Below, in pieces: positions 35,801-62,644 of a stretch of DNA of 64,000 bases. The first letter of the stretch is position 1, and the number at the start of each line of letters is the position of its first letter. The translations under genes and the position numbers were made by a program. The stretch lies in the NCBI GenBank assembly GCA_964036045.1, contig OZ038378.1:170438001-170502000 (forward strand), in the 5' to 3' direction. Under the pieces are notes generated by a model, which worked only from the letters and a program-made list of their open reading frames with translations, did no database searches and was not told the origin of the DNA. The stretch is from Eutreptiella sp. 'Long Island Sound 2002' (taxonomy: Eukaryota; Protista; Euglenida).

Positions 35801-36188
35801 AGCACCGCTAAAGGAGCTCAGCTATCATTTGTGCGAGGAAGAGACCAGTCTCGAGGCCAAGGGCACCTTGGTCCTGGGGCGGTGGTTACAGTTGTAGCAT
35901 CAAACCCGAAGCAGAAGCCTCAGCGTGGGCATCCATCCAGCTGAAGACAGACGGGCGGTGGCGGGCATACAGCACACTGGGCACAACACAACAAGGTGGC
36001 CAGAAACTTGGGTGGCAAAGAGGCCATGACCGATCTGCAGAATCGCTCAACTTGAACCAAATTGTTCTCGGATCGCTCCTTCAGGCAGCTCCGGTTGCAA
36101 TACAGCCACGCGCTCAGGTACCCTGCGCATCCTCAAGAGCATGCCCACCAATTTACAGGTGAGAGCCATGTTCCTGTGATCCATCGCA

Positions 36189-39100
36189 ATGGTGCGGTTT
36201 GAGTTGTTCCACAAGTCGCTTGAGCAGCTCCAGGCGCTTATCCCCATCTTAAAGGCGAATGGAGTCACGGCTGTGAACCTCACCAACAAGGGGCGGAATG
36301 AGCCCCTCTTGGAGAGCATCCGGCTGCTGCAGAAAGAGATGCCCGGCGTGGATGTTTGCCAACACTTCAGCGTCAAATACCAATACCAGGTCCTTGGGCG
36401 TCCTGGTCCGAACACCTCTTTTAGGAGTGGGACCGTGGGAGAGGTACACAAGATTTGGTATATTTTCTCCCTAAACATTGAGGCCTGTGGTTTGGGGCAC
36501 AAAAGGGCTCCAAACCACAATTATGAGGACGACTGAAGGTGCATGCGGTGCAAGTCCCCCCCCCCCCCCCATGTGCCCTGCTGCAGTTCCCTTGTGCATT
36601 TGTGTTTGGTGTGCCTCACTGCGGCTGCCTCGCTCCATGTGCCCTGCGGCGGTCCTGTTCTTTGCCATCGCTGCACTGTGCGCCCCACTCCCATTTATCG
36701 TCATTCAACAGAGGAGCGTCGAGCAGACCTTCTCCCACTTCCTGAGCTTTTGTCGCACTGCCGGCGCCGCCAAGATCCTCGTAGTCAGTGGCAGTGGGCC
36801 CCGGAAAGGGCTGGACGCTGTGCAGTGCGTGGAGAGGCTGGCCAAATTAGGACCTGCACCCTTGGGTCGAGTGGAGGTGGGGGTCGCGTTCAACCCGTAT
36901 TTCCCTGACGCCGAGGCGATGGCTGAGGAGCGTCGGCGGCTGGAGGCGAAGCTGAGGACTGGGACCGTGGCGCATTTGTGGCTGCAGTTCGGGAGCGACG
37001 TGGCTTCTCTGGAGAAGGGGCTGGACTTCATTGCAGGTGTTGTGGGAAGGTCCCGATACATTTGTACACATTTGCCCTATCCTAACGAATTTGAAGCTAA
37101 TTGTCCTTAGGCAGGCTTATCTTGTGACACCTGTGGTACATGCGGCATGCCCTGTGGTGCACGATTTGGGTACCCCCCCCCACCCGCCTGCGAGAACAAC
37201 CCCTTGTCAGAACAACAGTAGGTGTTGTTTCCGCAACTTCTTTGCCCTTTATACCCCCCCCCCCCCCCGCCGCTGTCAAAGCAACAGTTGTTTTTTTTTT
37301 TTTTAACTGTTGCTTTGTCGCAAGGGGACGAGGGGGGGTAGTTATCCGGAAACAAGGAAAATGTAGTTGAATGTGCAATTATCCCGCTATGAATTGTTCA
37401 TTTCATATTTATTCAGTGTATTGTGCCGAATTGTTGTGTATTATTATGTATTGGGCCTCTTCTCTTGACTAATGGTGCACATTGTGCCTGGAGATTGTGC
37501 CATGTCCAACGCCGAAGAACAAGGATCACCCAAGGTGGCAAGGTAAGCACAATCATGGGTGCACTGCAACGGAAGCACTCCTGAATCCTAACCCCTTTAG
37601 CCCCTCTGGCCATGACAGTCCCCGAGAGAAGGCACACCATCACCAGTAAGAAGGGAAACTCCATTGAATCCCTCTCAATGGCCTCTACTTAACTGATCCA
37701 GCACTCGAAACTAGACGAACAAGGGGGCAAATAGCCATTGAAAGTTAGAAAATCACTCAAGGGTGCCTTTATCAGGGGACCCGAGTTGAGGTGCATTCCG
37801 GCTTTAGCAAGTCTGGGGGGGAACGTTAGCGCGCCGGGCGCGTGCCGGGCATCTTTTTGGACCCGTGCCCGTCTAGTGGCCTTTTAGGGGGTGCACTAAG
37901 GGGGCGCACTTAGCGCAGTGCAGCTATTTGGGTGCCTGGCTGTACTAGAGACCCACACTTTGAGATACTAGGAGCATCATGGTGACCCCCTAGCGTAGAT
38001 TTTGACTTCTGATTTTGTCCCCTTTGTTGGGGACCCCCGAGAATGCAGGGGTGACGTAGCATTTCCGCCCTCTTTTGGGCCCCAACCTTCCGGTGCTATT
38101 GAGGAAACCGGGACAATCTTTGAATCCACGCTTTGTTGCGTGGAGCATCATGGTGACCCCTGGCGTAGGTTTTGACTTCTGATTTTGTCCCCTTTGTTGG
38201 GGACCCCCGAGAATGCAGGGGTGACGTAGCATTTCCGCCCTCTTTTGGGCCCCAACCTTCCGGTGCTATTGAGGAGAACGGGACAATCTTTGAATCCATG
38301 CTTTGTTGCGGACCATGGGAGCATGTCCCGCCTCAGATTTGGACTGACCAAAGCAACTCGGCCGCCACGCAAGATGAGGCAGAGGATGAGGCGGAAGTGT
38401 GTGTGTTGTGTTGCCAACGGCGCTCCACCGTCGCAGTTTGTGATGAGTGTAAGGGGCACTATTGTAATGAATGTATTGACACCCACACTTGTGGGACCAA
38501 TGTTGTTTGTTAAGTACACTACAAATGACAGTTGGAGTGGTTGAATTCACAGATATTGCTTTATTTTGCAACGTGCTTTGTAGGGAAGGTGTGCAGTGCA
38601 ATGTGGTCTACTTGGGGGGCTTCTCCATGAGAGGGTAAATCTGGGGCTGAAGTCGGGATAGTTAATAGAAAAGTAGCGCGCCGGGCGCGCGCCGGGCAAA
38701 CATTCCCCCTGGGGATGGTTTTAGAGGGTTTGCTATTTCGTGGGTTTCACCAAATATCCACTTACTGCAAAGACATTTCCACTCATCCACTCACTCATGT
38801 GTCCAGTCTGTTTAAGGCTCTGTTGAATTGGGTGTGGGACGTGAACTGGAGAAGACCATTCCACCAATTCCAAACTAGGCATTGCACATGCACATGCTAG
38901 CGCAGCCGACCTCGATCCCCATTAATGTCCCCTCGTCTTAACCACTGTTCGCTCGCTCACTCACTGCCTTACTCCCTCAGTCACTCGCTTGCTCATTCGC
39001 TTGTTCATCTCCCCCACCCCCGCCTGCATTGAGCATTGCTGAGAATTGTGTGAGATTGGAGAGGGTTGCACAAGTTCAGACCACGACCCACGGGAGAGAA

Positions 39101-40244
39101 TGGCTGGGCTTGGAGGAACTGCTGGGCTCCACCAACAAAAACTAAGCCCGCAATGTCAGACAAATCTGGACGACTGTTCTGCTCCACTGACCAAAGTGTG
39201 ACGACAGTAGCAAACAACATGAACAAGATCACAGGCTTTGGCGATCCAGGCGTGAACTGTGCCTGAAGTACATATAAGCGGAACGTCCAAGACACACAGA
39301 AGCCTCCCTGTCATTGCTTAGCACAACACCAAACTGTGTGTATAATTTGCGGGAGTGTACAGCAAATTCACGGGCTTCTTGTCTGCTGCCAAAGAGAAAG
39401 TATCAAGGGACGCCACAAAACACCTAAACCCATTTCAGGCAAAACAACCCCAACCCATGGCAAGGTACTGAATAGACTGGACATGGTGTTGTATAGAATG
39501 GGGTGTCCAATGTCTTTTGTGTGACGTGCTTTTGTTGTGAAATGGGATTGTTCGGGGGCATTGTGGGGGAAACGGGTGCCGGGAGTGCAGTTGTGCCGGT
39601 GTGAGTGGGAGACCTCAAATTTTGAGTTAGAAAGAACGTTCCGGGTGATATTTAGTGCACAAACCGATGGATCTCAGATCCCCCTTCCGCCCGCCTCCGG
39701 CGGCTTCAAAGCGTGTTTGCCCAGGGGGTTTTGGATCGCCTGGTGGCGCACTGCATTTCCAGGCCATTGGACTGTGGTGTACTGAGGGGGGGGGGGGGGC
39801 GGAGGCGCCAGCGACCAGCCTTCAGTGAGACGCAGGATTGTCCTGTGCATGTCCATTCGGGGGGAGGAGGCGCACCATCGCAAATTCGCCAACGGCCGGG
39901 GGGAGGGGGTTGTATTTGTGATTTGTACCGTTGCTTTGTCTCAGGCCTTGACCCGGCGCTGACCCACAACGTCCGCATCATCGGGTCCCTGTTCATCCCC
40001 TCGCCCTCCCTCTTGGCCCGCATGCGATTCCGGCCATGGAACGGGGTGTTTCTCAGCGACCGCTACCTCAGCGCGGTCCCCGAGGCCGACGCCATCACCG
40101 CGCAAATCCTCGCGCTGTACGCGCGCCACGACGTAGAGCCGCTGGTGGAGACGGCGGTGACCAACAGTAAAGAGTTTGACCGCGTGTGGCGGCTGCTGAA
40201 GGGCGTCCCGGTGGACCCCAGTCCGGCGTCTCTTGTCCGTGAAG
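36189..40244 (+). CDS. MTHFR-like (FAD-linked oxidoreductase TIM barrel) domain, exons 1-3
   Basis: By-eye correspondence to MetF motifs: RFELF (SFEFF), CQHFSVK (HLTC), ILVVSGSG (ILALRGD), [26 protein letters not shown] (K..AGA..ITQ), IIGSLFIP. Also contains [14 protein letters not shown]. Confidence 0.75.
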
Positions 40245-43200
40245 GTGTGCGGGTCGCTGGCCCGGACCGACCTCCTCGTCCTCGTCTCTCCGTGTCCCTT
40301 ACGACCCTCTGCGGCGCCGATGAGGAAGCACTTGACGCCCGGCACGCGCATCACAATCATGAGGGCCATGGGAGGGGCAGTCCCGCGGGGGTGGCAAGAG
40401 CGTCGTAGAGCGTTGGGGATGGTGCCGTGAGACCCAATCCGACGAGGCGTGGAATGGCCCTCTGAACAGTAGCGCGCGTTGTGGACGCGGTGCACATTCT
40501 CTCCCGACCGCCCTCCGCAGCGCTCTTCGTCCCTCCACCAACCTCGACAACCCCCCACAACCCTCCACAACCCTCTCCCAACGCTGTACAACCCTCCAGA
40601 ACCCTCTCACAGCCCTGTACGATAACCTGTTTGCAGGGCTTGCTACCAACGCGGCGTGTGGGCGGGCGTAGTATGAGTAGGTGTAGGAAGGGTAAGGGCA
40701 TCGGAGACGTCCACAAAACCTCTAAAACCCTCTCCAACACTCGTCAGCCCTTTTCCAGCCCCCACGACCCTTCACAGACCGAGTTATGGCCATTTTAGAC
40801 GCCCGGCCGGCCACGGCCGGGCAAAATGTTGTAGGCCGAAAACGGCCCGAAACGGCAAAATTCGCGATTTCCCGGGGCTACGTGCATTTTCAGCAAATTT
40901 TGCCCGTGGAGAAAAAAAATTTGAAGAACGCGAAATTCCGGATTTGATGGTCCGGGTTACTGTGCTTTTCCACCCTCTACAACCCTCTACAACCGTCTCA
41001 AACGCTTCACAACCCTCGAAACCCCTCATCACCCCTTTAAACCACTCTGCAACTCTCTAAACCACTCTACAAACCTCCACAAAACCTCCACAACCCTCTA
41101 CAACACCCTACAACCCTCTACCACCCCGCACACCCCTCTGCAGCCCTGCAGACTCCACCACAAGACTGTTCGGCTCAACGTCTTGCAACGCCACCAGGAC
41201 AGTCTTCGGTTCTTCACCCTCATACTACCGGTCCAGAAACCCCTACAATATCCCCCGATGCCCTGCAGCCCTCTACAACCCAAAGCCTCGTGCCCTGCCA
41301 GTCATGGGCAGCAGATCAATCACACATTCATTCATTCATTCGTTCACAGCGACCCTGGGGAAACGCGCCTTAGAGCCACCCGCCACTGACCTAAAGCGAC
41401 CGAAGGCCGATGTTGCGCCCCGCAAGACCGGCGTGGCAATTGTGTGGTTCCGGGCGGACTTGCGGCTGATGGACAATCCGGCCCTGGCCCATGCGGCGGC
41501 GGAATACACCGCAACCGTGCCGCTGTATGTCTGGGCCCCAGAGGAGGAGGGTGAGTGGGGCCCACGGGGTATGTCCGAGCAACCCACGCTCCTCAAGTCT
41601 CCCCCAGTCGCATTTTGTTTGGGTTCGCAGAGGTTACCGGTTCATAGGCAAATTGTCAACGGATCCAGCTCCTGCGGGCCCAATAGCGTTGCTGCTGTAC
41701 CTCACCCACCCTGGCCTCCATCAGGTGCCACTGCCTCTCAGGGCAGGGCTGCGGTGGGGTGCTTGGGTCTGCAAGGGGGAGTTGGAGGGCTGAGCGGCAT
41801 GGGCAGTACCCAACGCTCCCACTCCAATGCCAGACAAGCGGATCCTGCTGGGCCGGGCTGGGTCATGCAGCTCGACAAGGAGCCTCTGGAGGCCGCATCG
41901 AAAAACATACGCGCAGCATTTTTGTCCGAAAGGGTACACATTGCCAGGGCCATCCAGTGCCATGCCGCTGAGTGGGGTTGCGATGAGAAGATATGCTACA
42001 ATGGACCTCAACGCTTACATATTTTGCCCATTTCATCGCATCTCTGAAACCGGTGGGCGTCCGGACCGGTTCCACTGCAACCAGCCACCAACCATCCGTT
42101 GAAAAGGAGGGGGAGGGGACACCCTCTACACCTCAAAGTCATCGCCATGTTGCACTGATCATTTGAAGATGCGTAATTTCGGTAACCAGTTTTCACTGCC
42201 GGGTAACCGGCTTTCAAAAAGGACAGGGGGGTGGGGCCTGCGATCCCTGGTTCCAACCTGAAATTCTCAATTCTCAAGATTATATGGATCCGATGACCAG
42301 TGCTTCCATGGCCAGGCCCACAAATTGTTGGGACCAAGAGAAAAGAAGCAATGAGGATAGACAGGGGGGGGGGATTTCTATCAGCAGAGTACACCAGCAA
42401 TGGTGAGAACAGTCTGAGCACAAGGAAGAAAATAAAAGGAAACGGACGAAGACTTTGCATGTTGCATTGATTTTCCGGGATCCATTCCTTCATCTTCCCC
42501 AGGACAAGCGCTCCTGACACTCACTGACAGAAAAAGGGCGTATCCAGGGTTTTGCTGAACCAAGCAAGCGGGGGGGGGGGCGGACCCAGGCACCCAGAAG
42601 TTTGGGAAACGGAAGACCCACAGGTGTCCCACCCCCACGGCCACGGCCACGAGAGGGCCGTAATTCCCACGTGAAGGAGGTGAGTTGTGGGAAACTGAAC
42701 AAGCCCTCCGCAGCACCAAACAATCCAACGAAAGCATCGCTCTCAATCCACTGCAACCCATGCAAACCGCCAGCGCTGCGCAACACGCCTGAACTCTCTC
42801 CAACACTCTGTATTCCTCAACCATCCTCTTTGCAACCGCGTGCGACCCTCTATGGCCCTCGGTAACCCCCTGCCAGGGATGCATTAGAAGGGAAGGGACC
42901 TCAGAGGCGGCCCCAGAAGCGCTTAGGCAGGCGGATGGAGGAGGTTGCCAAAGCGGTTGGGGGCGATTACTGTCGGTTACAAATGCCATTGCAGCTGGCA
43001 CTTGGCGTCAGGGAGACAGTGGCTGGGCATAGGCTGGGCGCCCCGAGGGGGGGGTGGGGGTACGCCCCACCCTTCCAGTCCAGACCCCCCCCCCTTCCCC
43101 TTGGGGTGGCTCCCGTGATGGGAGCCCCGCGTGGGCCCACAGGGGATGGGAAAGGGGGGGGGGGTACTCCAACAATGTTCGCCACGACATGCTGATCATT

Positions 43201-46200
43201 TTGAGGTACATCACGGGGAATCTTTTTCCGCATTGTTTTTCTGGGCTGCTTTGCAGCCCGATTTCTCAGCCAGGACTTGTCCTCAGACTGCCACTTTAAA
43301 AGGGCTCTGTCATGGGAGCCCCCCCCCCCCTCCAGGGGGTCAAAGGGCTTGAACTACCCCCCCCTCCCCCACGTGCAAACCGCAAACCTGTTTGGGTTGG
43401 GGTGAGGGGCTGCAGTGGGAATGTTGGGGAGGCTGGTCCTGCCCTGTCCTGATCAGTCCGTTCCACCACCCGTTAATCCGGCGAAACCGGTGGGGCAGGT
43501 ACCCCCGCCACGCCCTTGTAATCCCCCCCCCCCCCAGGGGCGGCACTTGGCCCAAAAAGCATAGGAACTGCCTGGCGCCGAAGAAAAATCTTCCTTAGGT
43601 TATGCTGGAACTGCTGCAGTTTAGTGCTACCATTGTGTGGTGCCCTGGGGGGGGGGGGGCGTCGCTTCATGACCGCCCCCCCCCCCCCCCTTGGGGGGGA
43701 ACCGTCATGACATTGGGGGGCAGTTTTAAAGGGGTGGGGGGTAGAGGGTGTGGAATGGGTGGGGCGTGGGTGGGGCGTGGGGGGGGGAGACTTGGGTGTC
43801 ACCGTTGGGGCCTACGTAGGGATTGGGCTCAGGCCGGCACCCGTGCGATCCGCTGCGGTCGCGGTGCGCCTGCTCTGGGCACACGGTGGGGCCGTCCCCC
43901 CCCCCATCCTCCTCTTTCCCCCGCCGCTCCGGTGCGCTGGACAGTGTCCGTGGCATGGGCTGATGCCGTGGCCCGTCGTGCACCGGGCAAAAGGGTCGAG
44001 GGTATCCGGTGGTTTGGCACATCGGTGTCCAATACAGGGGGGGGCTTTAATTGGGCGGTGGGAAAATTTGTTTGGACAAATTTCGAAGCCCTCCCTCGTA
44101 CCAAATATTTCCTTCAATTTTAAGGATTCTTTGTGCCATATTGTGTCAGGGGGTGCCATAACGACACCCACCTTTTTTTTCTTCACTATGACATCCACAC
44201 TCTGATGTTACAGCTCTGCCAGATTCTGATGTAGCTTAGTTGGTAGTTGCGCTAGGTTCTAGTTCCAAGGGTCCTGGGATCAAACCTAGCTTAGGGTGTA
44301 TTTTTATATACCTTTTTTATGTCTGCACGTCTGCATGTCATCTGAACGTCATGCCCACCAGGAAATGACAGTATCCATCCAGAGCCCACCAGGAAATATC
44401 AGTGACCATCCAGAGCCCACCAGGAAATAACAATACCAATTTTTTACCCCCTTAATTTTGGTCATCCGAAAAAAAAACCTCTTAAATTAAAGCCCCCCCC
44501 TGTATTGAGACATTTGACGGGCGTGCGCTGGCGCTGATGGGTCTGTCTGTCTGTCCGCAGGAGCGCAGGAGGTGTGGCTCCGGGAATCGGTGCAGTGCCT
44601 GCACGCGTCGCTGCAGTCCAGAGGCAGCGGGCTGGTCCTCCGCGGGGGCCCGGCCGGTGCTGCCCACGAGTTGTTGGCGGTCGCGAAGGAGACGGGCGCG
44701 GCGGCGGTGTTCTTCAACCGGCGCTACGAGCCTGCGGTATGCGCCCGTGTGCCGTGTGCCGCGAGCCCCCCCCCCCTCCCGTGAGGCCGCCGGGGGTGCG
44801 AACGGCCCCCCGCCGCACTGCCCCGCCACCGCCCCCCCGTCGCTCTGCAGGTCCGCGCCCGGGACGAGGCCGTGGCGGCGCAGCTCCGGGCCGAGGGCGT
44901 CGACGTCAGGACGTTCAACGGGTCGCTGCTGTACGAACCGGAGCAGGTCTGTGCCGCCGGGCGCTGGGGGACGGAGGCCGATCCGGCCCCCACAGCCCCC
45001 CACCCCCAAGCCTCGCCCCATGGCCCCTGCCCAAGGCCCATCCACAACCCGCTCCATTGCCCACCGGCCCTTGTTGCCGCGTGGGGCCGAGCCCCCGATC
45101 GCCCCTACCCCCAACCCTTTGCCCCGATGCCACGGCACCCCCCCCCCCCCCCGTCACCCCTGCCCCTTTCTCTCGCCCCGCCCTCCCACCCACGCCCCTT
45201 TGCACTCCTTGGGCGCCCGTGGGGATAGTCATCTGGCAAACCTCCTCCGTCTCAAAACCCTCCAGAGCCGCGTATATCGCACGACGTCGCCGCCACCCCC
45301 CAGACGTGTGTGTGTATGTGGGGGAGGGGGGGGGGGGGGGCGGCAGACAAGGAGGAGGGGCGCAGCAAGGCAGGAGAGGCAACCAGGACAGGGAACCAGA
45401 ATGGAGGGGATGGGAGAGCGTGCGCATGGGAGGCAGCAACAACAAAGGGGATGGCCTGGCCAGCCAGCCCTGTCGCTACCGGGTGCCAGGGCAACCCCTG
45501 CTCAACCGGCATCAGGTGGGGGGTATCTCCCGCAGCCCAGATGGGCTGTTTGCGCAACAAGAGCGGGAGCCCACCAGGGGCAGACCAGCCGTGAGGGGGA
45601 AAGGGATATATGGTGTACGGCCGGGACAACGCGTGGAGGAGCAGGGCACCTGGGCCTCACGCACACGGAAACACAGCGAGGCAGGTTATGGACGGCCTGT
45701 GGACAGAGGCGTGTGGACAGCAAAAACAGTCAAACGACGCTGGCAACAACCAGCACAACCTCAATACGCCAACTACTGGGCGCCGCTGACGCGCAAACGG
45801 CACATCATGCCACATCCAGCACAGCCCCGGCACACCAACCACTGGGCTCCGCGAACGCGGAAACGACACCAGCAAGAGCACCGGCCCCAGCGGCCGACAG
45901 AAAGAAGCAACCCGACGCAACATGCGAAGGGAAGAACGGGTGACCGTCCAGGGCCCCGTAAAGGAACAACAATCAGACGGAATGTCACACAGGGGGGGGG
46001 GGGGGGCGCCATGACCACACCTTCGGTGGTTTGTAGACATTGTCTGCTCCGAGTACACACGGTCTGCGCATTGTAGACGGGGGCGCCGTGTTGTAGATGC
46101 GGTTGTTTTTTGTGAGCGGTGTGGCACGGAACGCCGAAACGTGCCGACACGAAGCGCGCCGCACCGCAGCGGGTCGACTGTTTGGCCCCGGTGGTCTGGC

Positions 46201-49200
46201 GGCTCGGCCCCAACCGCCTGCCTCATGTCCCGGACTGTGCGCCGGTGCCCATGCGCGGCCAATGAACACGGGGCCTGTGAGCACATCCGCAGCGGTCGTG
46301 CGATCCGCGTTGATCGCAACCGCTGAGGTCGTCACGGCGGGTCATCAATAACACATTTCACTGGGGCGCCGGGTGCACTACGCGGTCACCCACCCGTAGT
46401 CCCCCCGACCGGACGCCGCACGATGTGCCCCAATCGTTCCTCAGATTCATATGCCCGGCGGTTGGGGCGGAGGCCATTGGGGCACGCTCACCCCCTTCGT
46501 ACGCCTCTGCGAGCGGCTGGGGCCGCCTTCCAGGCCCTGCGCCGCCCCCGCGCAGCTCGCGGTCCCGCGTGACGGCCTTCCCAGATCCCTCGGCATCGAC
46601 GAACTGGGCATCGCTCGGATGCCCGTGTCCGCGAAGACCGGACAGGTCCGATGCACGTCCTCCTGCACCGCGTCTCGCATTTGACAGGGCGGTGGCACGG
46701 GGGGCTCTCGGAGGAGGCAGCCCCCAACAAATCGCCAAAGAGCCCTCTGTAGCGCCTTTGTTGGCACTCTCTGATGCCCCCCCGCCCGCCCCCCGGCGTT
46801 GTCGGGTTCCGTCGACCGCGTTCGGTTACCCGCCAACCGCCGTCGATTGGCAGCCGCTCTAGACCCTGCCAACGGCAGATAATTTCCTTTCATTCTTTTT
46901 TGCCTCAAAACGCACCGGGACCCCAGAATTGGGGGAGGGTGGGGGGTTTCGGGGCCGGTGTTGCGTCAACCCAAACAATCGTCCGATGCAACAGCGTAAG
47001 CGTCCGTGAAATGACACGCATCATCGTTTTGTCGTCTCATTCACGTACCGATTTTGTGTGCAAAGCATGGGAAGTAGGGTCCATGGAGCCCCCTTGCCCT
47101 CAGCGCGCGGGGCAGGGGATTGCCATGAAACCGGTGCTGAATGCGCAGGAGAACCGCACTCCACTGACGTGCTTTGGCCCCCTGCGGCATGCCGCGTGCC
47201 CTCAAAAACGTTTGGGACTGTCATGGAAGTCTCCCGTTTGATATGCGGTGGTGCCTTGATCGTTTCGGGGCTGTTGCTCTGCAAGGAATGCCATCCACAC
47301 GCCGCAATCAGTGTCGCCTGGAGGGCAAGTCTGGTGCCAGCAGCTGCGGTACTTCCGGCTCCAAGAGCGTGTACACATGTTGCTGCTGCTCAAAAGCTCG
47401 TAGTCGACCCCTGGGCATGGGGCATGGGGCATGGGGCATGGGGCATGGGGCATGGGCCGAGCATCGGGGGCTTTGCTCGACGCAGGATTTGACGAATCGT
47501 CGTTCAGCCACACCGGGTTTTCTTTCGAGAATTTCGAGCGGCCCCTGTTGTGCTCCTTCCCCTCGCCACGTGACGCCACATTCGGTCTCTGCCTGGGAAC
47601 ACACGGTCTCCGTCCTCTGTCCGTCCCGGTCGTGGGACGTGAACGAGATGTTAGAATCGATGGGGCATTGGATTTGAGGTGTTCTTTTGGCCAGTGGGCC
47701 CGCACACTTGTCTTTTTACTTTGTCTGGGCGCGCAGGTTGTGGACTGGGGCAAAGGCATCCGCGATGCATGGCGCTTCGGAGAGCAGCACGCGTTCGCTC
47801 AAATGCAGGCCTTCATCAAAAGTGGTCTCCCGCAATACGAGGTCTGCGGATTCCGCCTCCCGCTTCGGCATCGGACGCCTGGGCAAAGCCCGTCTCATTG
47901 CTGCGCCGCCCAAATGTTTCCAGTCGCCCGCCCAACCCCCCCTTCCCCCGCCATTTGGACCCTTTTCTGCCGCGCGGGACCCCCACGCCCCAGTCCCTTC
48001 GGAGTGTACACAAAAGGCGTCATCAGACGTCTTTTATCGGGTGCAATTCCCGGAGGCATTTGAGACAACTGCCTTTGCCTTCACGGTTGCCCCTGCTCCG
48101 TGATACAAACCCGCAGCTCGGGTACAGAAGTGCCCGGGATTGCTTGGCCTATGGCATAGGGAGCACACTCCACGAGCAAGACCACGGGCACAATGCCTGG
48201 AAATGCAGTGCGCCACGAATGGAAAGCATTTGGTGATCCAGAACCCCGTGGCCCTGCGTTGCCTGATTCGTGGTTCAGAGCACTCTGATTTTGACAGTCT
48301 GGGAAGGACTGCATGACATCAGATAGATGCTGTGCATGCACGAAGGAGGACTGTGGGCATGCATAACGTCCGGGGCGTTCCTCACATCAGAATCCTAGAA
48401 TCAGTGCTGGTGTATTTTGAGGGTGTATTTGGCATCAAACTCCAGATTGAAGGGGAAGGATGCCACTGGACCTCCCTCGAGGCTGAACTGAGTGTTGACC
48501 CCACCATCAATCTCATTGCCGTCGCCATGCAACAACAGGGAAATTCCAATGATCCCATGCACAAGCAATGGTTATGTTTCCATGATTGCCATTCCCTCAA
48601 TGCCAATGTGCACTGTGCTCCCTCACAGGCCTACTTTTCCCCAAAACGGTGATTTACTCCTCCCCCTCTGAAAAAGCATCCCACAACAGAAAAAAAGGTA
48701 TGTCATGAATTTAATGCAAACCGTTACTCACTCACATGGTGGAAACCCTATGCGGTGGATGCCATGAGGTTCAGAAGACTACGACAGACCCATGGCAAGG
48801 ATTGAGGTCCTCGATTGGCACTGACACCTTTTTTGATATGGTGGCTGCCCACTACAAGTACGTACCAACTGCGCTGCTGAGCACACCGTAGGCCCATCAC
48901 GGAGCACGGGCATGGAAATTGGGCCAAGTGCACAATTTTGGACGAAGAAATGGCCTACATCTACATACAGATCTATTGGCATTTCGACCATTGCATGTCT
49001 GTGCTCACTAAGCCCAACTGAAGAGTCCCGAGTTTGTTCCCTCTTTTTAGGTACAGAAGCACTACCTTGTGTAGAATATTGAATCACGAGCAGTTGGACA
49101 AAGTTGCACACTTTGTTGCACAAGTGTCCACTTTCTGCATGCGCTGTGCAGTTTCTCTCTGCCATGCTTCCCAAGCCCAAAACAGATGAACGTCAGGAGA

Positions 49201-55200: not shown

Positions 55201-58200
55201 TGGTGGGAGACGGCTGTCCATGATTGCCCATGTGGGGAGGGTGAGCAGGGCAACACCACCCCAGTTTGTGTTACGATTCCAACATCATTCGTGGTGGAGA
55301 GCACCCGCCAAATCCTCACGGTCTGGGAATGACTGAAAATGAAGGCTGCTGGCGCCGGCAGTGGACTGGACCCCACAGGGACAGAAGCACAGGGACAGCC
55401 GTCTGGGTCGTCTGTCAGGATACGCTGCCCCACAAACGAACAATGACTACAATTTCCTCTCCAAAACTTGAACAATTGCGCATATCCGGAAGTACGAAGG
55501 GCATGCTTCGTTAGCCTTTGTGGCACCCCCCCCCCTCACGGTAATGGGGGTGTGCCGGCGTAATGTGCGCCGCCACAACACATGACTTGTTCTTGTAGAT
55601 CTGTGCATCGTTTTTGGTTGAATACCTTGATATCAGTTGGGTTGAAGGAGAGAAGTGGTTTCATGACTGCCTTGTGGATGCGGACGTTGGTATGCCGAAG
55701 GAGTTCTGCAAAACCAGCGTCGAAGGGGCTTTATGCGTCTGGGAAGTCGGTTTTTGAAGGCGGCGGTCTGATTGAATTGCCAAGACCTGGGTAACAGGGC
55801 GTGCACCGGCCGTGGAAGGGGTTGGGCCTGAGGCTTGTGATGGTATGGTGGTGTGGCAGGATTTGCATATGCCAACTACAGGGGCTACAGACGGCAGCAG
55901 CAGGACAGGGAGGGCGCACGGAGGAGCAGATCAATGAAGACGGCAGCAGAAGGGACTGCAGTTGCAGCAAAGGGCGAAATGGCGTGTGGGCCAAACGGAC
56001 ATGAGGAAGCAGCTGTCAAGCTCTGGCGGAAAGATGGATGTGGGTCAGGGACGCCGCGTATCAAGGCAGGGTGGTGCGAGGGAGGGAGGGAGGGAGGGAG
56101 GGAGGGAGGGAGGGAGGGAGGGAGGGATATTTGGATTTGGATTTGGGTGCCGATCTTAAGGCTCACAGGACGCCCGGGGGGGGAGCACGATGGCGTACCT
56201 GACGACTCTGCAGATCGGCTGGCCAGGGGGAGGAACGGAGGGACGGAGGGAGGGATTGGATTGGATTGGATTGGAGAGTGTCGTTTTGGCTGGTGCCACT
56301 AGTCCCCACATGGACAACTCGCAATTTTTTCTAGGCTGGATGCACCTACATACCACCTTTACCACCCAACCCACTGTACATACACTCAACACCAACCCCT
56401 TCTGCACAGCACGTCCAATATCAAGGCATTGTGGCCCGAGGGAGGGAGGGAGGGAGGGAGGGGAGGACAGGGCAGAATGGGCAGGACGGCACTCTTGGCC
56501 TTGGCCCTTGACCAGCCCAGACATTGCACAGCCCAAGCAATAGACCCCCCACGCCAGGGCTTCGGCCCTTGCTGGCATCGGTGTGCCCTGGCTGCATGCA
56601 GTCCGCCCCCGCCCCCTCGGGATTGGAATGCAACAACAATCCTCAGCCCAAGCTCAAGCTCAAGTGATCATGGGCGGTCCAAGCGTTTGGGCCACGAACG
56701 GGGGTGGCCTCAGCCCCCCCTGCGTGAGGCATGGCGAAGTTCAAAGGCCCATGACGGTTGGCAACCAGAGGGTCCCTGGGCATCGGAGGCGAGAGTCAAG
56801 GTGCAAGAGTTGCCCCGACGCAGTGGTGACTTCTCGGAGAAGCAAGGGATTAAGGATGTGCAGGCACAGCCGAGTGAGGGCAGAGGAGGATGGGGGAGGA
56901 GACTGTCCCATGGACAATGCCCACCAACACAAAGGCGCGGTGTTGTGCAGGTAGTAGGGGTAGGAGATCGGAATTTCAGAGATTCGTTTTGGAGGGTTCA
57001 CACGTAGGGACCACACAACAGCCCGTCTGTCCTTAGCCCCCCCCTCTCCCCCTCTTCCCCGCGCCTCCCTCCCTCCTTCCCTCCCGGCCCTCAACACCTG
57101 AGTTTAAGAGGTGTTTAAATTTTTGACCGTGGAGTTGATATTGGGAGCGGCTGGTCCTCCGCAGGATGTACCCTCTCTGTTCTCTGACTGACGAAACGCC
57201 GCACGCGCTGTCTCACAGCCATCAACGCAATGATGTGGCAGAACGCCGGCAAGTCCGGCATCGACCAGTGGAATTTCACAATGTCCCCAGAGAACGGATC
57301 GCAGGTGTGCTCGCTGCTCCAGGCAGCATCGCCATGTCGCACAGACGTCATGAAATGAATTCCCGCCGCACCGTTGTTCCGCCACATCCGTCCCCCCCCC
57401 CCCCCCCACGCACCGATAATTTTGGTCAACAAAGCAGATCACCCAACAAACATGGCGCTGGACACCGGCCGCACCCTACGGCACCCAACAAGCCTGTCTC
57501 AAACATCCCTCGACTGGGCACCCCAATGCCGTGCCAGCCCTTTGTTGTTGGCAACAGACCTGCTCTCTGCCACAAGTGCTCTCTCACCCTCGACCCGGGC
57601 CGCAGTGAGAACGGAGACACAAGGAAGGTCCAACCGACAATGCCCCTGTGTTTGCGTCTGGTGCGTGTACTGCGCCTTTCCCCGGTGCCTTTGTCTCAGC
57701 CCTTGCGCTTGGAGGGGGAGGGTGGGAGGGGGAGATTTTTAGAGGGCGAAAAGGTTGTTGTAGACAGATTTGGAAGCCGCCCCTCCGCGCAAACATGTCC
57801 TTCAATTTGAGGGATGCTGTGTGCTACAATGTGTGCACAGGGAATGACAGCAACCATCCACAGCCCCCTCGGAAACAACAGCAAGGGACCTTGTACCAAA
57901 AATTTCTTTCATTTCTACGACGGAGTCCAAACAACTCCCCTTAATCTGGGCCCTCCCAAAAAAAAAACCCTCAAATTAATCGAACCCCCCCCCCCCCACA
58001 GCCCCAATTTTGGGGCGAGGGTCCGCCCTGCCGACCGCTTCAGTCGGCCCCAACGCCGCTCCCAGCGGTCCGTACCCGCCAGCCATGGCCTCCCGACTGC
58101 TGTTCCAGCCGCTGGTAACACTTCTGCAAGCCCCCGTGAAGGCCCTCTTCAGCCCACCGCCCCCGCTCAAGCGCACGCAGCCGCAGGGGAGTGGACGCAA

Positions 58201-61200
58201 GTCCAGGGGGAATGCTGCAAACGCGAGTAGTAGGACAGCCGTTCCCGCTGTCCCCCGGAGAACACCCCCCCCCCCTGCCCCCCGAAGACTTACCTCCATC
58301 AACAAAAGCAGGCCACGCAAAGAACATGGCATTGGTTGCGCGCGGTACCTCTCCAGCCCGTCCACGCTGTCTATCTGTCAGCCAGTCATTTCTGCTCTCA
58401 CTTAGAAATGGTACGTGCAGTAGCACCGCGTGTGTGCGCCGGCCTTGTGGATTACCCCCGCCCCCCGCCCGTGTACGTCGTAAGTGGGGCTTTTTTCTTC
58501 GTTTGCCAGTAAATGCAAGTAAAAGTCATTGAACTGCTGTGATGTCAGCAGCTGTTTTTCCTGCTGTACGTTGAGTGAATGTGGCAATGCGAGGGGTCTT
58601 TGCATTGCAGCGGAATAGAAATGCCTCGCACTACGAGTTCCTGGGACCCGCATTACATTTGCCTCCCCCACACGTGGCCTATCAACGCCCCGGGGCGTGC
58701 GTGGGGCACCGAGGGGTTCGGTTGCGTCACGACTGGGGCTCGCATTGCTTAAGTCCTCTGGAGGTGGACCGCGTACACTAAAGCACTGCTGAGGGGGTAT
58801 ATGTGGAGGCATAGGACGGGCGTAGGGGGGGGCTCATTCCAAGCCATTCCCCCGTGCCATGGTCCTCTGAGCAGCGATTTGGACCCCGGCTTTCAGATCG
58901 GTTGTCCCCACATGTCACGATGGCCCCGGCCGAGGCTGATGCGTCCCATTAGAGCCGTCTGCAAAGCTGTACAAGCCCGAGATGATCGCCAGTGTGCCAA
59001 GCGAGTTGGTGTCAAACCGGGCCATTCCATGAGGACCGGGCCATGAAAGTAATGCAAATGGGCAGAAGGAGAAGGAGAAGGAGGAGAAGGAGGAGACCGG
59101 CATTTGCATAGAGTTTAGAGTGGCATACTCAATGGATTGCCCCGCCGCCCCCGCATTGCTCAGCATGAACCGCCCACAGTCCCAAGGCCTCCCTCTGCAG
59201 CACTCAACAAGGATGGGACACTGCAGACTGCAGTACTGATTGGCCTATTTTCTTGAATGAATGGGTCAGCCCCCCTCCCCCTCCCCCCCCCACGTCTCTC
59301 CATCAGCTCTTGTGCACCCCCTCATGCCTCAGGATCCAAGTGGCAAGTACACGCGCCAGTGGGTACCAGAACTGAAGCGGCTCCCCAATAAGTACGTACA
59401 CAAGCCCTGGCAGGCCCCAGCGGATGTGTTGAAGCAAGCAGGGGTTGTCCTGGGGCAGACGTACCCGGAACGCATCATCGAAGATCTGCGCAAGGCCCGC
59501 GCAGTCAGTGTCGCAAGTACAGCCCCCCTTCCCCTCTTCCTCCCGCGCGCGCGCTCGCTCCTTCGCTGCCGGACCACAATCCAGACAACAATTTGTTGGT
59601 GTAATGTAGGATAGCACTGTTTTGTGCCGCGATTGAAGTCTCCTTGACTCCCATCAAGCACCGTAAAGGGGTCCCGTGACTCAGCCGTCATAGCACATGA
59701 CGCATGACCGAGAAGAAGCCGGTTCGAGTCCCATGTTGGGCAGGGGCACCTAAGCTGGGGCATAGGTCGGCGAACTACGTCCGGGGCGCTAGGGGCGTCC
59801 TCGGTGATCCCACGCATCCGCGCTTCTTGGGCGCCTGGACGTCGCTGGGATGTTCCACCTCCTCCTACCGCCGCAACAGCCGTGCAAGGGGGAGGCGCTG
59901 TACGGGACCCGCCCATGCCAGGCCCAAAAAGTACAAGTTCTTGAAGTGCCAGCGTATCCCTACACGGGCCGGACCGTAGCCTCCTCCTCTGCCCTTATCC
60001 CGCTTGTTGAGGGGAGTCACCAACCCCTGCGCTGGTGTTGGTGGGGGCCTTTTTCAGGCGAAACCCCTGTCCCTCCCAGAGGCACCGGACAATCAATCCA
60101 GACGCTGACTTCTTCCCGAGATCCAAAAGAGTTGGGACCCTGCAGCCAGTAGGGGTTTCTCTTCAGATGCTTCAAGCATGATGAAGTGGTTTCAGAACCG
60201 CATCCCGCTACCCACACTGGAAATGATCGCCAACTCGACAAAAATTCGGTTGTATATTGTATCCCCAGCCGTAAGCCCCCCCTCGCCCCTCCTCAAAGAG
60301 GCTGGGTGGGCGAGTTGTTGGATGCTCTTCTGCTTCGAACCCCTCTGACGTTGCCCCCATACGCACACCGTCGGTTGGTAGCTAACCGCCGTCACTCAAC
60401 CGGCAACTGCCATTGTGGACTTGGCCCTTCCTGGTAGCGGGCTGCTGCTGATCGCGATGTTGTTGACGTTGTTGACATGTGTAGTCCCAAAAAAACCTGT
60501 GGTCAAGCAGTATCTGACCTGTCTTCATCCTGCTCCAGATATGTTGGACATGAAGCGCCAAACGCTGCAGCACATCGATAACGGGGGCTATGACATCATC
60601 GTTCTGCCGGACGGCACAACGACCCGGGTGTTTACCAAGCAGGTGTAACTCCCCTCCACCGCTTGAGCCCTGACGAATCCTTTGGCAGGTAGGTCACTGC
60701 TGGGGGGCTGGTGGGGGACTGCTGGGGCCCAGTTCGTTGTAGTGGAGCCGACGTTCTCAAACGTGCTCCTCGTTAACTTGAGCAATAGGTGCAAGAGGGG
60801 ACACCTCAATTTCGGGGTCTGTTTGATGCTCGCAGCTATTTGATGGGGCATATACGTTCATTGCAATAACTTTTGTGTGTTCTATATGTGATTTACACAT
60901 TGTTGTAGGACACTACATTCAAGATTGACTATATTTGATCTCAACTATCACACATAGTTGGCTATTTCTTTTCAAGACCTTTGGCCCCGGTAGTATATAA
61001 GAGCGGTAACTCCGTGTGGGGTTCTATTTGTTCAAGGCTCTTCTCTCTTTGGTGTTAGTTTTTTGACTGTCATTTGGTCTATGCAAAATGACTTGTGGGA
61101 CTAATGGAGGTGGACCTTCATAAACATTCATCATGGGTTTAGTCGATTGCTATTTGCTTTGTTATTTTGCTTTTGCTATTGTTGTGTGTCAATGTGCGCG

Positions 61201-62644
61201 CGATGTGATATCTACTGGGATGGGATCAGCGAGGATCAATATTTGTCTATGTATGGCCCTCGGTTTTTCAGCCCAAGCCTGGGCCAAGTGGAGTGAGAAA
61301 GCATTATTGCCCTATCCTTGTGGAGGGGAGTCACAGAGGAGCCGCTCATGTTTGTGCCAGACCCCACATGTACCTAGACATGTTCGCATGGCATGCTCAA
61401 CATTCAGGATCCGCGATTTGCCTGCACAAATGGGCCGGCATCTGGGCCGACCGAAGAGCCTAGCATATCACCGGCGATCCAACTTGGCAGCTCGGCCCCA
61501 AGGTCCTGCCTTTAATTACCCTTACCCTGCGGGGTCGGGGTCTGCGGCGCGCCCGCGGCGCGTAGTAAGCGCTACAAACGACTCAGTGTCCGGGCCGGGA
61601 TTTGCCTGCACAAATGGGCCGGCAGCCGGGCCGGGATTTGCTTGTACCAATAAGCCGGCATTTGGCCAGCCAAAGAGCTTGGCATATTGCCCGTTATCCA
61701 ACCCAATAGCTCAACCCCAAGGTCCCACCCCAGCAGCCTATACAAACAAGCTCGCGTCCGGGCTAGGATTTGCCTGTACAAATTCGCCAACATTCGGCTG
61801 GCCCAAGAGCCTTGCATATCGCCGGTGATCTGGGCCGGTGGCTCGGCCCCGAGGTTCCTCCCCGGTTGCATGTACAAATTGGCTGCCAGGCCCAGCATAT
61901 GGATAGCCATTTCGGTGTACAACCCAGGAGCATACCAAGCAATATTGTTGCCTTGCCTCCAATATTGGGTTGCATATACCAAGCAACCTTGCCTACCAAT
62001 CTTACCAGCAACATATATTTGGCAAAAGTGCCCTACCTTCTTTAGCTGTCTAGCTTCATGTGCAGCTGCCTAGAGGAGTGTAAAGTGAGCCCCCCCCCCC
62101 CCGCCTCCCGGTCAAGCACATCCTTGAGGCCCTGTGCAACACATGCATGTTGCAGACCCTGTTTGTTGTATATGGTCTAAGGTGCAGCATGCTGTACCGA
62201 ATGCGTTGGCTGGCCAATCCACCAATTTGGCAGGTTTGGAGCCTGGATCACTTGCACGGCCAAGCTGAGACTGCCAGCAAGCCCCACTGCTGCACGGAGT
62301 TAATCAGCTGCCCCTTCACCCCGACTTGTTCTCGTCTCAAAAGCACTGCACCATGTGCCCCTTTGTCCCCTCAATTCAGGTTAACCTCCATTTCCTTCCC
62401 CTGCATTTTGCAGGAGTACCGCCTGGATAAGTCCGGTCAGCTCTTGCCGCCGCCTCTGAAAAGAGAGCCCAGGCCCTCCAGCCCTTCACATCCCTCAAGT
62501 CCTTCAAGTCCCCGCCAGACTACCCTCGACTCATTCCTTGACCTTTCACCAGAGAAAGCCGTCAAACGGGAGCGTGGCAAGGCAAAGGGAAGGACAGGCA
62601 GACTGCAGGGGGCTTTCGGGGGGTCAAAGCCAAGAGCACAGTAA
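36189..62644 (+). CDS. Fusion protein (890 aa): N-terminal MTHFR/MetF-like FAD-linked oxidoreductase domain plus plant-like (CryP-type) cryptochrome/photolyase with a C-terminal extension
   Basis: 16 GT-AG exons: 36189-36389, 36712-37036, 39945-40244, 41350-41568, 44561-44736, 44851-44946, 46445-46645, 47737-47841, 49661-49766, 49871-50024, 50833-50926, 55599-55689, 57219-57304, 59333-59516, 60539-60642, 62414-62644. Total 2673 nt, every junction phase-compatible, no internal stop. Confidence 0.75.
37817..38709. mobile_element. MITE (possibly PIF/Harbinger-like) in intron 2, containing a ~175-bp tandem duplication related to the 86-bp satellite
   Basis: Termini GGGGGAACGTT / AACATTCCCCC with a possible 3-bp TSD TGG. 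The duplicated block lies at ~37975-38325. Confidence 0.5.
40545..41280. repeat. Degenerate CAACCCTC(T/C)A minisatellite in intron 3
   Basis: Repeated AACCCTCTAC/AACCCTCCAC units at ~40545-40620 and ~40970-41130. Confidence 0.75.
41350..62644 (+). CDS. Cryptochrome/photolyase family domain, exons 4-16
   Basis: Motifs [126 protein letters not shown]. Confidence 0.95.
44227..44298 (+). pseudogene. tRNA-like sequence (tRNA pseudogene or SINE head) in intron 4
   Basis: A-box-like TAGCTTAGTTGGTAG and B-box-like GGATCAAACC at tRNA spacing, followed by a T-run; the anticodon arm is degenerate. Confidence 0.45.
45759..45996 (+). repeat. ~240-bp dispersed intronic repeat, copy 2
   Basis: Matches 24258-24496. 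Confidence 0.9.
47412..47456. repeat. (GGGGCAT)n heptamer repeat
   Basis: Direct reading, ~6 units. Confidence 0.95.
51270..53290 (-). mobile_element. Decayed non-LTR retrotransposon (LINE-like RT plus C-terminal zinc knuckle) in intron 11
   Basis: FAYRPGHNA (RT domain 2/3-like), [12 protein letters not shown] (QG motif region), ITYSDD (catalytic YxDD), [16 protein letters not shown]. Multiple frameshifts and stops. Confidence 0.75.
54290..54900 (-). mobile_element. Second decayed LINE-like RT fragment
   Basis: [11 protein letters not shown]...[15 protein letters not shown] resembles RT domains 3-4; frameshifted and truncated. Confidence 0.45.
56080..56127. repeat. (GGGA)n microsatellite
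   Basis: Direct reading. Confidence 0.95.
58920..59046 (+). mobile_element. Possible tyrosine-recombinase (DIRS/Ngaro-like) remnant
   Basis: [13 protein letters not shown]...KPGHSMRTG resembles the YR HSxRxG motif; very short. Confidence 0.25.
61410..61885. repeat. Internally repetitive element in intron 15 (GATTTGC(C/T)TG(C/T)AC(A/C)AAT x4; AAGAGC..GCATAT x3)
   Basis: First motif at ~61415, 61599, 61634 and 61767; second at ~61453, 61673 and 61806. Confidence 0.7.

Follow-up and report, generated by a model that had tools for sequence, protein, structure and literature searches.

A euglenid member of a widespread family of predicted fusions between an MTHFR-fold barrel and a cryptochrome

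We analyzed 64,000 nucleotides (nt) of DNA from Eutreptiella sp. 'Long Island Sound 2002' (contig OZ038378.1). This whole stretch is called the window here, and all positions follow its numbering. On the + strand, a gene at 36189-62644 encodes a protein of 890 amino acids (aa), the representative in a euglenid of a cryptochrome variant that is widespread and uncharacterized. In the account that we favor, one gene specifies a two-domain protein of a family found in diatoms, other marine algae and a euglenid. The N-terminal ~265 aa form an orphan branch of the methylenetetrahydrofolate reductase (MTHFR) barrel superfamily that has kept the Glu of strand β1 and the Gln of strand β6, and a basic linker of ~45 aa resembling a nuclear localization signal connects this barrel to a complete photolyase-homology region. 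The C-terminal part would act as a blue/ultraviolet-A (UV-A) flavin photoreceptor and not as an enzyme repairing cyclobutane pyrimidine dimers (CPD), while the conserved C-terminal face of the barrel may be the binding site for a reduced folate or pterin. Both domains might cooperate, probably in the nucleus, such that the light state and the folate/one-carbon state affect each other, either as a light-gated enzyme or as a ligand-gated photoreceptor. Taking all these parts jointly, we regard the account as moderately probable.

The fusion is supported first of all by homologues from other organisms. When exon 2 (108 aa) was compared with 1.84 billion cluster representatives using phmmer, 291 matches were obtained, mostly of 270-370 aa. 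Seven long matches were scanned further; all of them carry DNA_photolyase behind the N-terminal domain (N-domain), and five also carry FAD_binding_7. A search with one fused homologue, labeled P0010 (887 aa), yielded at least 81 fused relatives of 560-1060 aa, and for most of these the alignment spans >90% of the query. Wherever a species is named, it is a diatom (Odontella aurita, Cylindrotheca closterium, Thalassiosira exigua, Nitzschia inconspicua and Amphora coffeaeformis). MMETSP transcriptomes are the source of several fused relatives, indicating that both domains reside on one mRNA there. The common order is N-domain, basic linker, photolyase-homology region and a shared C-terminal motif.

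The window protein carries all four of these features. It is colinear with residues 22-859 of P0010 in 16 tblastn blocks, and likewise colinear with the homologues P0028, P0151 and P0153. Because it matches fused homologues from end to end, a chance origin of the 890-aa model is excluded, and the single fused gene of the original prediction has its counterpart in each of these relatives. Fused homologues have KRxK/KRxR motifs in the linker at the position equivalent to exon 4, and in the window it is exon 4, beyond the 41350 acceptor, that encodes the KRx(K/R) motif of the linker. The C-terminal motif NDxGGYDxIxLPxGxxxRVFTKxEYR, which occurs in fused clades of the P0010 type and of the P0028 type alike, is present in the window protein as well.

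The closest relative of the window N-domain is P0007 (48% identity), which was called as a 352-aa stand-alone open reading frame (ORF) on a metagenome contig of 4.6 kb. Its gene (L084 1680-2738) has no introns in the barrel and continues after it into a Ser/Pro-rich tail with the sequence AAKRHRPAP. A tail with a linker motif of the fused type suggests a fused gene interrupted by an intron or by the end of the contig. The 1.85 kb that follow P0007 and the 8 kb that follow the gene of Amorphochlora yielded no cryptochrome exons. In a tree of the N-domain, the window sequence groups with P0007 outside two well-supported fused clades, with weak support for the backbone (81-88). The 'stand-alone' labels in this tree are unreliable, as P0007 itself carries the linker motif.

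The window DNA is eukaryotic, with long introns and a GC content of 0.49-0.63. The exon model was rebuilt by enumerating frame-preserving GT/AG pairs from three anchor points, guided by tblastn and junction scoring with the fused homologues. This independent rebuild gave the same count as the original prediction, namely 16 exons that splice in frame into 890 codons, followed by a stop codon at 62642-62644. The spliced length is 2673 nt, and all 15 introns are of the GT-AG type. The features are as follows (^ marks the splice point):

36157-36158, + strand: AG acceptor (ttacag^gtgaga), 30 nt upstream of the ATG at 36189; an RNA contig has 10 non-genomic letters before it
36189-36389, + strand: exon 1, start codon and barrel strands β1-β3 (MVRFELF...; invariant R3, E5, N30, K34, H59, S61)
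36712-37036, + strand: exon 2, barrel strands β4-β6, matched by an RNA contig and the 291 homologues
39945-40244, + strand: exon 3, barrel strands β7-β8 and start of the linker, ending in the phase-1 donor AAG^GTGTGC
40245-41349, + strand: intron 3, between the domains, 1105 nt
41350-41568, + strand: exon 4, basic linker resembling a nuclear localization signal (GKRALE...), then start of the photolyase-homology region
44561-44736, 44851-44946, 46445-46645 and 47737-47841, + strand: exons 5-8, remaining α/β domain and inter-domain loop
49661-49766, 49871-50024 and 50833-50926, + strand: exons 9-11, helical domain binding flavin adenine dinucleotide (FAD)
55599-55689, 57219-57304 and 59333-59516, + strand: exons 12-14, FAD-binding helical domain
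60539-60642 and 62414-62644, + strand: exons 15-16, family-specific C-terminal motif, basic Ser/Pro-rich tail and stop

The N-domain was characterized at the level of its fold. After splicing it comprises 275 aa, which can be aligned over their whole length both with stand-alone proteins of 265-350 aa and with the N-terminal portions of fused proteins. An AlphaFold2 model was built on the family alignment with P0007, a homologue and not the spliced window protein itself, as first sequence. It is a (βα)8 barrel with a mean predicted local distance difference test (pLDDT) score of 82.6, exceeding 90 across most of the barrel. The top 50 Foldseek matches of this model in the PDB are all MTHFR (E ~1e-10, 12-19% identity), with template-modeling scores by target of 0.61-0.71 for single-domain MTHFR chains. 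After re-ranking with VIA-align, 31 entries at Z 19.5-16.9 are all MTHFR-type folate enzymes, comprising MetF, eukaryotic MTHFR, the FAD-independent Mfr, a Sphingobium enzyme and a Clostridium protein crystallized with 5-methyl-tetrahydrofolate (5-methyl-THF); other barrels reach at most 15.1. The neighbors in the AlphaFold DB and the ESM Atlas are MTHFR and MTHFR_2 as well. A repair barrel of the UV-endonuclease or Endo IV type was also considered and is ruled out by these 31 of 31 best matches.

Conservation was computed over 124 non-redundant family members, including those of Prochlorococcus, and is given in window numbering. Invariant or nearly so are R3, E5, N30, K34, H59, S61, G94, A126, N128, P129, E140, R143, K147, Q159, G161, D163, G189, S190, P194, R205, P206, W207, G209, Y234 and E244, all of which the window protein retains. 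Most of them occupy the ends of strands or the loops that follow; the invariant loop RFRPWNG is a feature of this family's own. E5 is conserved in 100% and Q159 in 94% of the members. The barrel was compared with E. coli MetF (1ZP4/1B5T; PF02219), with which it shares the (βα)8 fold at Z 19, with 243-250 residues aligned and the strands colinear one by one. An alignment with hhalign, of low confidence and used only as a residue map, is colinear over 1-265 of the barrel and 24-295 of MetF. It equates the Glu of β1 (E5 with E28), the His of β3 (H59 with H88), the Lys of α5 (K147 with K172) and the Gln of β6 (Q159 with Q183), the latter within WLQFGSD facing ITQFFFD. Thus, the equivalents of E28, H88 and Q183, which had been predicted to be kept, are invariant or nearly so throughout the family.

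Glu28 is the proposed catalytic acid of MetF, while Gln183 and Asp120 bind the pterin (PMC11094777; bioRxiv 10.1101/2022.11.18.516900). The Glu and the Gln are common to FAD-dependent MTHFR, FAD-independent Mfr and Mer (PMC11094777; bioRxiv 10.1101/2022.11.18.516900), and the catalytic Glu is found on β1 in each case (MetF E28, Mfr E9, Mer E6; PMC11094777). Mfr (MSMEG_6649; 8BGR/7WMZ of M. hassiacum; PF19345) resembles the barrel in its fold, in the Gln and in the N-terminal Glu (E9 of hMfr, E5 here). It differs in being a stand-alone bacterial metabolic enzyme, and no sequence relationship between it and the barrel was detected. Mfr shows that the MTHFR fold can work without flavin (bioRxiv 10.1101/2022.11.18.516900). 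Our data, resting on the homologue model, support an N-domain that is MTHFR-like in fold and hallmark residues.

The original prediction had called this part an MTHFR-like flavoprotein and had proposed a comparison of exons 1-3 with the fold of FAD-linked oxidoreductases; the homologue model matches MTHFR barrels. Of that designation, the likeness to MTHFR stands for fold (Foldseek, VIA-align) and hallmark residues and does not extend to membership in an MTHFR sequence family. A flavoprotein is no more than a possibility, because the FAD-independent Mfr matches nearly as well (Z 16.9-18.4) and the presumed flavin-contact motifs of MetF are not kept.

Several results speak against the account given at the outset. 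In Pfam, no match was found for window exons 1-3 searched singly, for stand-alone homologues, for the Prochlorococcus protein or for the N-terminal parts of fused homologues, and the curated cut-offs of PF02219 (MTHFR) and PF19345 (MTHFR_2) were not reached. The N-domain is without a match in NCBIfam too. A profile of 59 family sequences found nothing among the PDB sequences at E values up to 10, and exon 2 as query gave nothing relevant there. Identity to MetF is 12-18%, which is below every sequence-family threshold, and the probability that hhalign assigned to a match with E. coli MetF alone was 2%. In addition, Asp120 is absent, as had been predicted: VVSGSG faces ALRGD of MetF, so that R118 is replaced by Ser and D120 by Ser or a gap. 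The position of the MetF motif TYG reads (L/T)NK in the barrel family. TYG and RGD, which we take to be the flavin-contact motifs of MetF, are thus both lost. The linker is long, of low complexity and varies from ~45 to 130 aa among homologues, which favors tethered domains over a fixed interface. Finally, no data on cofactor, activity, localization or phenotype were found for any member of the fusion family.

In one alternative, the two domains are fused, but the barrel no longer binds folate or pterin and serves as a dimerization, scaffold or output domain or acts on an unrelated substrate. TIM barrels often switch substrate, which counts in favor of this alternative. So do the missing sequence-level membership in the MTHFR family, the loss of Asp120 and of the presumed flavin-contact motifs, and the annotation of the Prochlorococcus members merely as 'hypothetical' or 'paired amphipathic helix repeat-like'. 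However, some 25 polar residues located where strands end hardly vary between Prochlorococcus, diatoms and the window, a pattern typical of a ligand site and not of a scaffold. Among them are the Glu of β1 and the Gln of β6 that all methylene-tetrahydropterin reductases have in common (PMC11094777), and all 31 best structural matches bind folates. Moreover, Mfr provides the role of Asp120 through Glu55 of another loop (bioRxiv 10.1101/2022.11.18.516900), so that the loss of Asp120 leaves folate binding possible. We therefore consider a barrel without folate or pterin binding rather unlikely, though it survives better than the other alternatives.

The cryptochrome part is recognized directly by sequence families. 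Pfam DNA_photolyase (PF00875) matches exon 4 with its positions 1-45 (E 4e-12) and exon 5 with its positions 48-100 (E 5e-11). FAD_binding_7 (PF03441) matches exons 10, 11, 12 and 14 with its positions 3-38, 46-76, 77-106 and 140-194, respectively. Full-length homologues match both domains at E values of 1e-24 to 1e-64. The best PDB match of the photolyase-homology region of P0010 is 4U63, the class III CPD photolyase PhrA (E 4e-75), followed by plant CRY2 and CRY1 (1e-59 to 1e-54) and then by E. coli photolyase. These matches agree with the plant-like cryptochrome that had been predicted here.

Functional residues were mapped by alignment with E. coli Phr (NC_000913) and with a Phyllobacterium photolyase related to class III PhrA, using what we take to be the accepted numbering and roles of the E. 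coli residues. The Trp triad is kept (equivalents of W382, W359 and W306 are all Trp), and the equivalent of N378, which faces N5 of the flavin, is Asn. By contrast, the CPD-binding residues are replaced (E274 by Arg, W384 by Asn, N341/R342 by Gln/Asn), and only W277 is kept. The stretch PYFRIFNP is replaced by a shortened IDQWNF in every fused homologue aligned there. Taken together, this pattern argues for a photoreceptor over a CPD repair enzyme. The Phyllobacterium photolyase gene is located on plasmid pPT1018 (L003 1-1725), where a DUF1365 gene directly precedes it with an overlap of 4 nt. The same pairing of DUF1365 and photolyase is known from other bacteria.

The C-terminal part might nevertheless be a working DNA-repair photolyase, with the barrel making, holding or recycling its folate antenna. 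Among solved structures a class III CPD photolyase is the closest to it, it retains the Trp triad and Asn378, the linker resembling a nuclear localization signal suggests a nuclear location, and class III enzymes as well as CryP use methenyl-THF (PMC8591175). Yet the Phyllobacterium photolyase keeps E274, W384, N341 and R342, all replaced here, and the change from PYFRIFNP to IDQWNF, with its deletion, is found in every family member. Furthermore, MTHFR chemistry gives methyl-THF and not methenyl-THF. In our judgment, a repair enzyme is quite unlikely.

Whether the two domains are joined in Eutreptiella itself depends on the junction 40244/41350. Donors of the 890-aa gene follow the consensus (C/A)AG^GT(G/A/C)T(G/C)(C/T), and the hexamer GTGTGC after 40244 recurs behind exons 11 and 13. 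Ahead of 41350, the acceptor reads TTCGTTCACAG^CG. Both sites are in phase 1, and the junction codon G^CG encodes Ala. The sequence therefore reads as originally proposed, with the phase-1 donor GAAG^GTGTGC at 40245, the phase-1 acceptor TTCACAG^CG at 41349 and the linker that results from joining them.

RNA evidence was obtained from three estuary metatranscriptome runs with near-identical sequence at a depth of 3-6x, whose contigs were placed on 36000-41999. One link from 36174-36386 to 36709-37033 confirms the splice between exons 1 and 2, and another from 36781-37033 to 39942-40235 that between exons 2 and 3. Two contigs leave exon 4 at ~41568/9 and then run into the next exon, confirming the exon 4 donor. 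The junction itself is not confirmed in this way: no contig among the three runs spans 40244/41350, with one stopping at 40235 and one starting at 41380. Depth is nil on 40245-40399 and 41200-41379, although exon 3 is covered, and the depth in the middle of intron 3 belongs to a high-copy repeat. Because no RNA contig bridges it, the junction rests on homology, reading frame, splice consensus and coding statistics. For the last of these, codon log-odds trained on the 890-aa gene itself, and not leave-one-out, are positive for 16 of 16 exons (0.02 to 0.50). For intron windows the mean is -0.25 and the 95th percentile 0.03. The 54 codons of read-through past 40244 score -0.10 and the segment from ATG 41304 to 41351 scores -0.22; both score like intron, which is supportive only, given how the exon scores were trained.

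Intron 3 contains an alternative stop (TAG at 40406-40408) and an alternative ATG at 41304, and two separate genes could in principle use them: a barrel mRNA reading through to the TAG, and a cryptochrome mRNA leader-spliced at 41349 or begun upstream of ATG 41304. The missing bridging contig would fit this arrangement, as would the frame of ATG 41304, which is that of exon 4 with no stop between, and the stand-alone barrels known in other organisms. But the first in-frame ATG past the 41350 acceptor is the Met of LRLMDNP and thus falls behind the conserved WFRADLRL strand (WFRxDLR), just as the original prediction had stated; by codon score, the read-through and the ATG-41304 segment resemble introns; RNA depth is nil on 40245-40399 despite the covered exon 3; the donor hexamer at 40244 is identical to two others and the phases match; and homologues in many taxa, transcripts included, show an identical order of fused domains and share the linker motif, encoded here by exon 4. 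Two genes are therefore very improbable, and we are highly confident that Eutreptiella makes a fused barrel-cryptochrome mRNA.

The 5' end of the gene and two of its introns have features of their own. Letters 11-239 of one RNA contig align to 36158-36386, whereas its first 10 letters match nothing in the genome. These 10 letters ahead of 36158 look like a 5' leader or an upstream exon, and the AG there looks like a leader acceptor. The 5' untranslated region (36159-36188) contains an upstream ORF of three codons (ATG TTC CTG TGA, 36168-36179), 9 nt ahead of the main ATG. Intron 3 harbors a high-copy repeat at ~40400-41200, with a DNA word depth of 5,000-38,000 at 40400-40999 (baseline ~4). 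It is flanked by degenerate ACAACCCTCT-like runs, which can be read as a long open frame of PQPSTT-like peptide but look like low-complexity satellite rather than coding sequence. In intron 2, a very high-copy repeat at 37800-38800 has a DNA word depth of 100,000-420,000 against a baseline of ~4-5 and is present in RNA contigs too. This repeat contains a tandem duplication of ~170 nt, and its ORFs at 38002-38175 and 38172-38513 start with the same peptide. It also contains a Cys-rich, zinc-finger-like stretch (CVLCC...).

Outside the fusion family, true members of the barrel family exist as stand-alone proteins. A scan of prokaryote genomes with the barrel family pattern found 162 relatives, and the best 80 loci were fetched. 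Apart from two loci of Synechococcaceae, these 80 belong to Prochlorococcus, with 29-35% identity over the full length. Members from Prochlorococcus and prasinophytes have 260-285 aa, a full-length identity of 30-35% and the same invariant residues as the window N-domain, but are not fused; eukaryotic stand-alone members also include Amorphochlora amoebiformis and chlorophytes. At 66 of these 80 loci, the barrel gene is followed on its strand, 0-87 nt downstream (in alignment coordinates), by a gene for an uncharacterized protein of 381-385 aa. A Rossmann motif binding FAD/NAD(P) marks the N-terminus of this neighbor, for which neither family nor PDB searches gave a closer match. Examples from Prochlorococcus are L009 6019-7979, where the ORFs overlap by 4 nt, and L026 5986-7972. 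The barrel and the Rossmann oxidoreductase are possibly a two-gene unit in this very abundant marine cyanobacterium, but since Prochlorococcus genomes are syntenic, the pairing amounts to one weak hint.

A more specific version of the favored account can be formulated, in which a flavin-free barrel would be a live folate/pterin redox enzyme that is reduced or switched by the photoexcited FAD of the photolyase-homology region, giving a light-driven or light-gated one-carbon oxidoreductase in the nucleus. The barrel stands beside an FAD/NAD(P) oxidoreductase at most fetched Prochlorococcus loci and is fused to another FAD protein in algae; both point to such a light-driven oxidoreductase, without proving it. 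We consider this version quite unlikely.

Compared with known systems, the barrel differs from MetF in lacking Asp120, in having the RFRPWNG loop and in being fused to a photoreceptor. PhrA (4U63) and the plant cryptochromes CRY1/CRY2 (1U3C, 6K8I) share with the window protein the complete photolyase-homology region, the Trp triad and Asn378, whereas the fusion family adds the barrel, the basic linker and its own C-terminal motif and has lost E274, W384 and N341/R342. The plant-like CryP of diatoms binds FAD and methenyl-THF and has a C-terminal extension of ~70 aa (PMC8591175). A parallel in architecture is dualchrome, a phytochrome-cryptochrome fusion of Pycnococcus provasolii that was found in marine sequence data and is reported from one species only (PMC8591175). 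It is likewise an algal cryptochrome with a large extra N-terminal domain. Its partner, however, is a second photoreceptor, while the widespread fusion family carries an enzyme-like barrel. Besides dualchrome, the cryptochromes treated in reviews of algal photoreceptors (2021, 2025) and in an open-ocean survey are of the plant, plant-like (CryP), animal-like and DASH types, and an N-terminal enzyme-like domain is not mentioned there; in the reviews, dualchrome is the sole cryptochrome fused to another large domain. Our literature search, with some subscription papers beyond reach, found no paper on the barrel-cryptochrome architecture and none joining MTHFR, cryptochrome and diatom. The original remark that no characterized protein with this architecture is known agrees with this search, but the architecture itself is widespread in diatoms, marine metagenomes and transcriptomes.

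Cryptochromes are usually described as a photolyase-homology region with a C-terminal tail. The barrel-cryptochrome is a second type of cryptochrome fusion, which many diatoms and abundant clusters of marine metagenomes contain and which a euglenid now joins. The fusion partner is an enzyme-like barrel of the folate-reductase superfamily that retains the two hallmark residues of that superfamily. The barrel also defines an orphan MTHFR-like family throughout Prochlorococcus, where it is without functional annotation. If the two domains cooperate, blue light would be tied to folate/one-carbon metabolism, or folate status to light signaling, in major primary producers of the ocean, and a natural template for light-controlled enzymes could follow.

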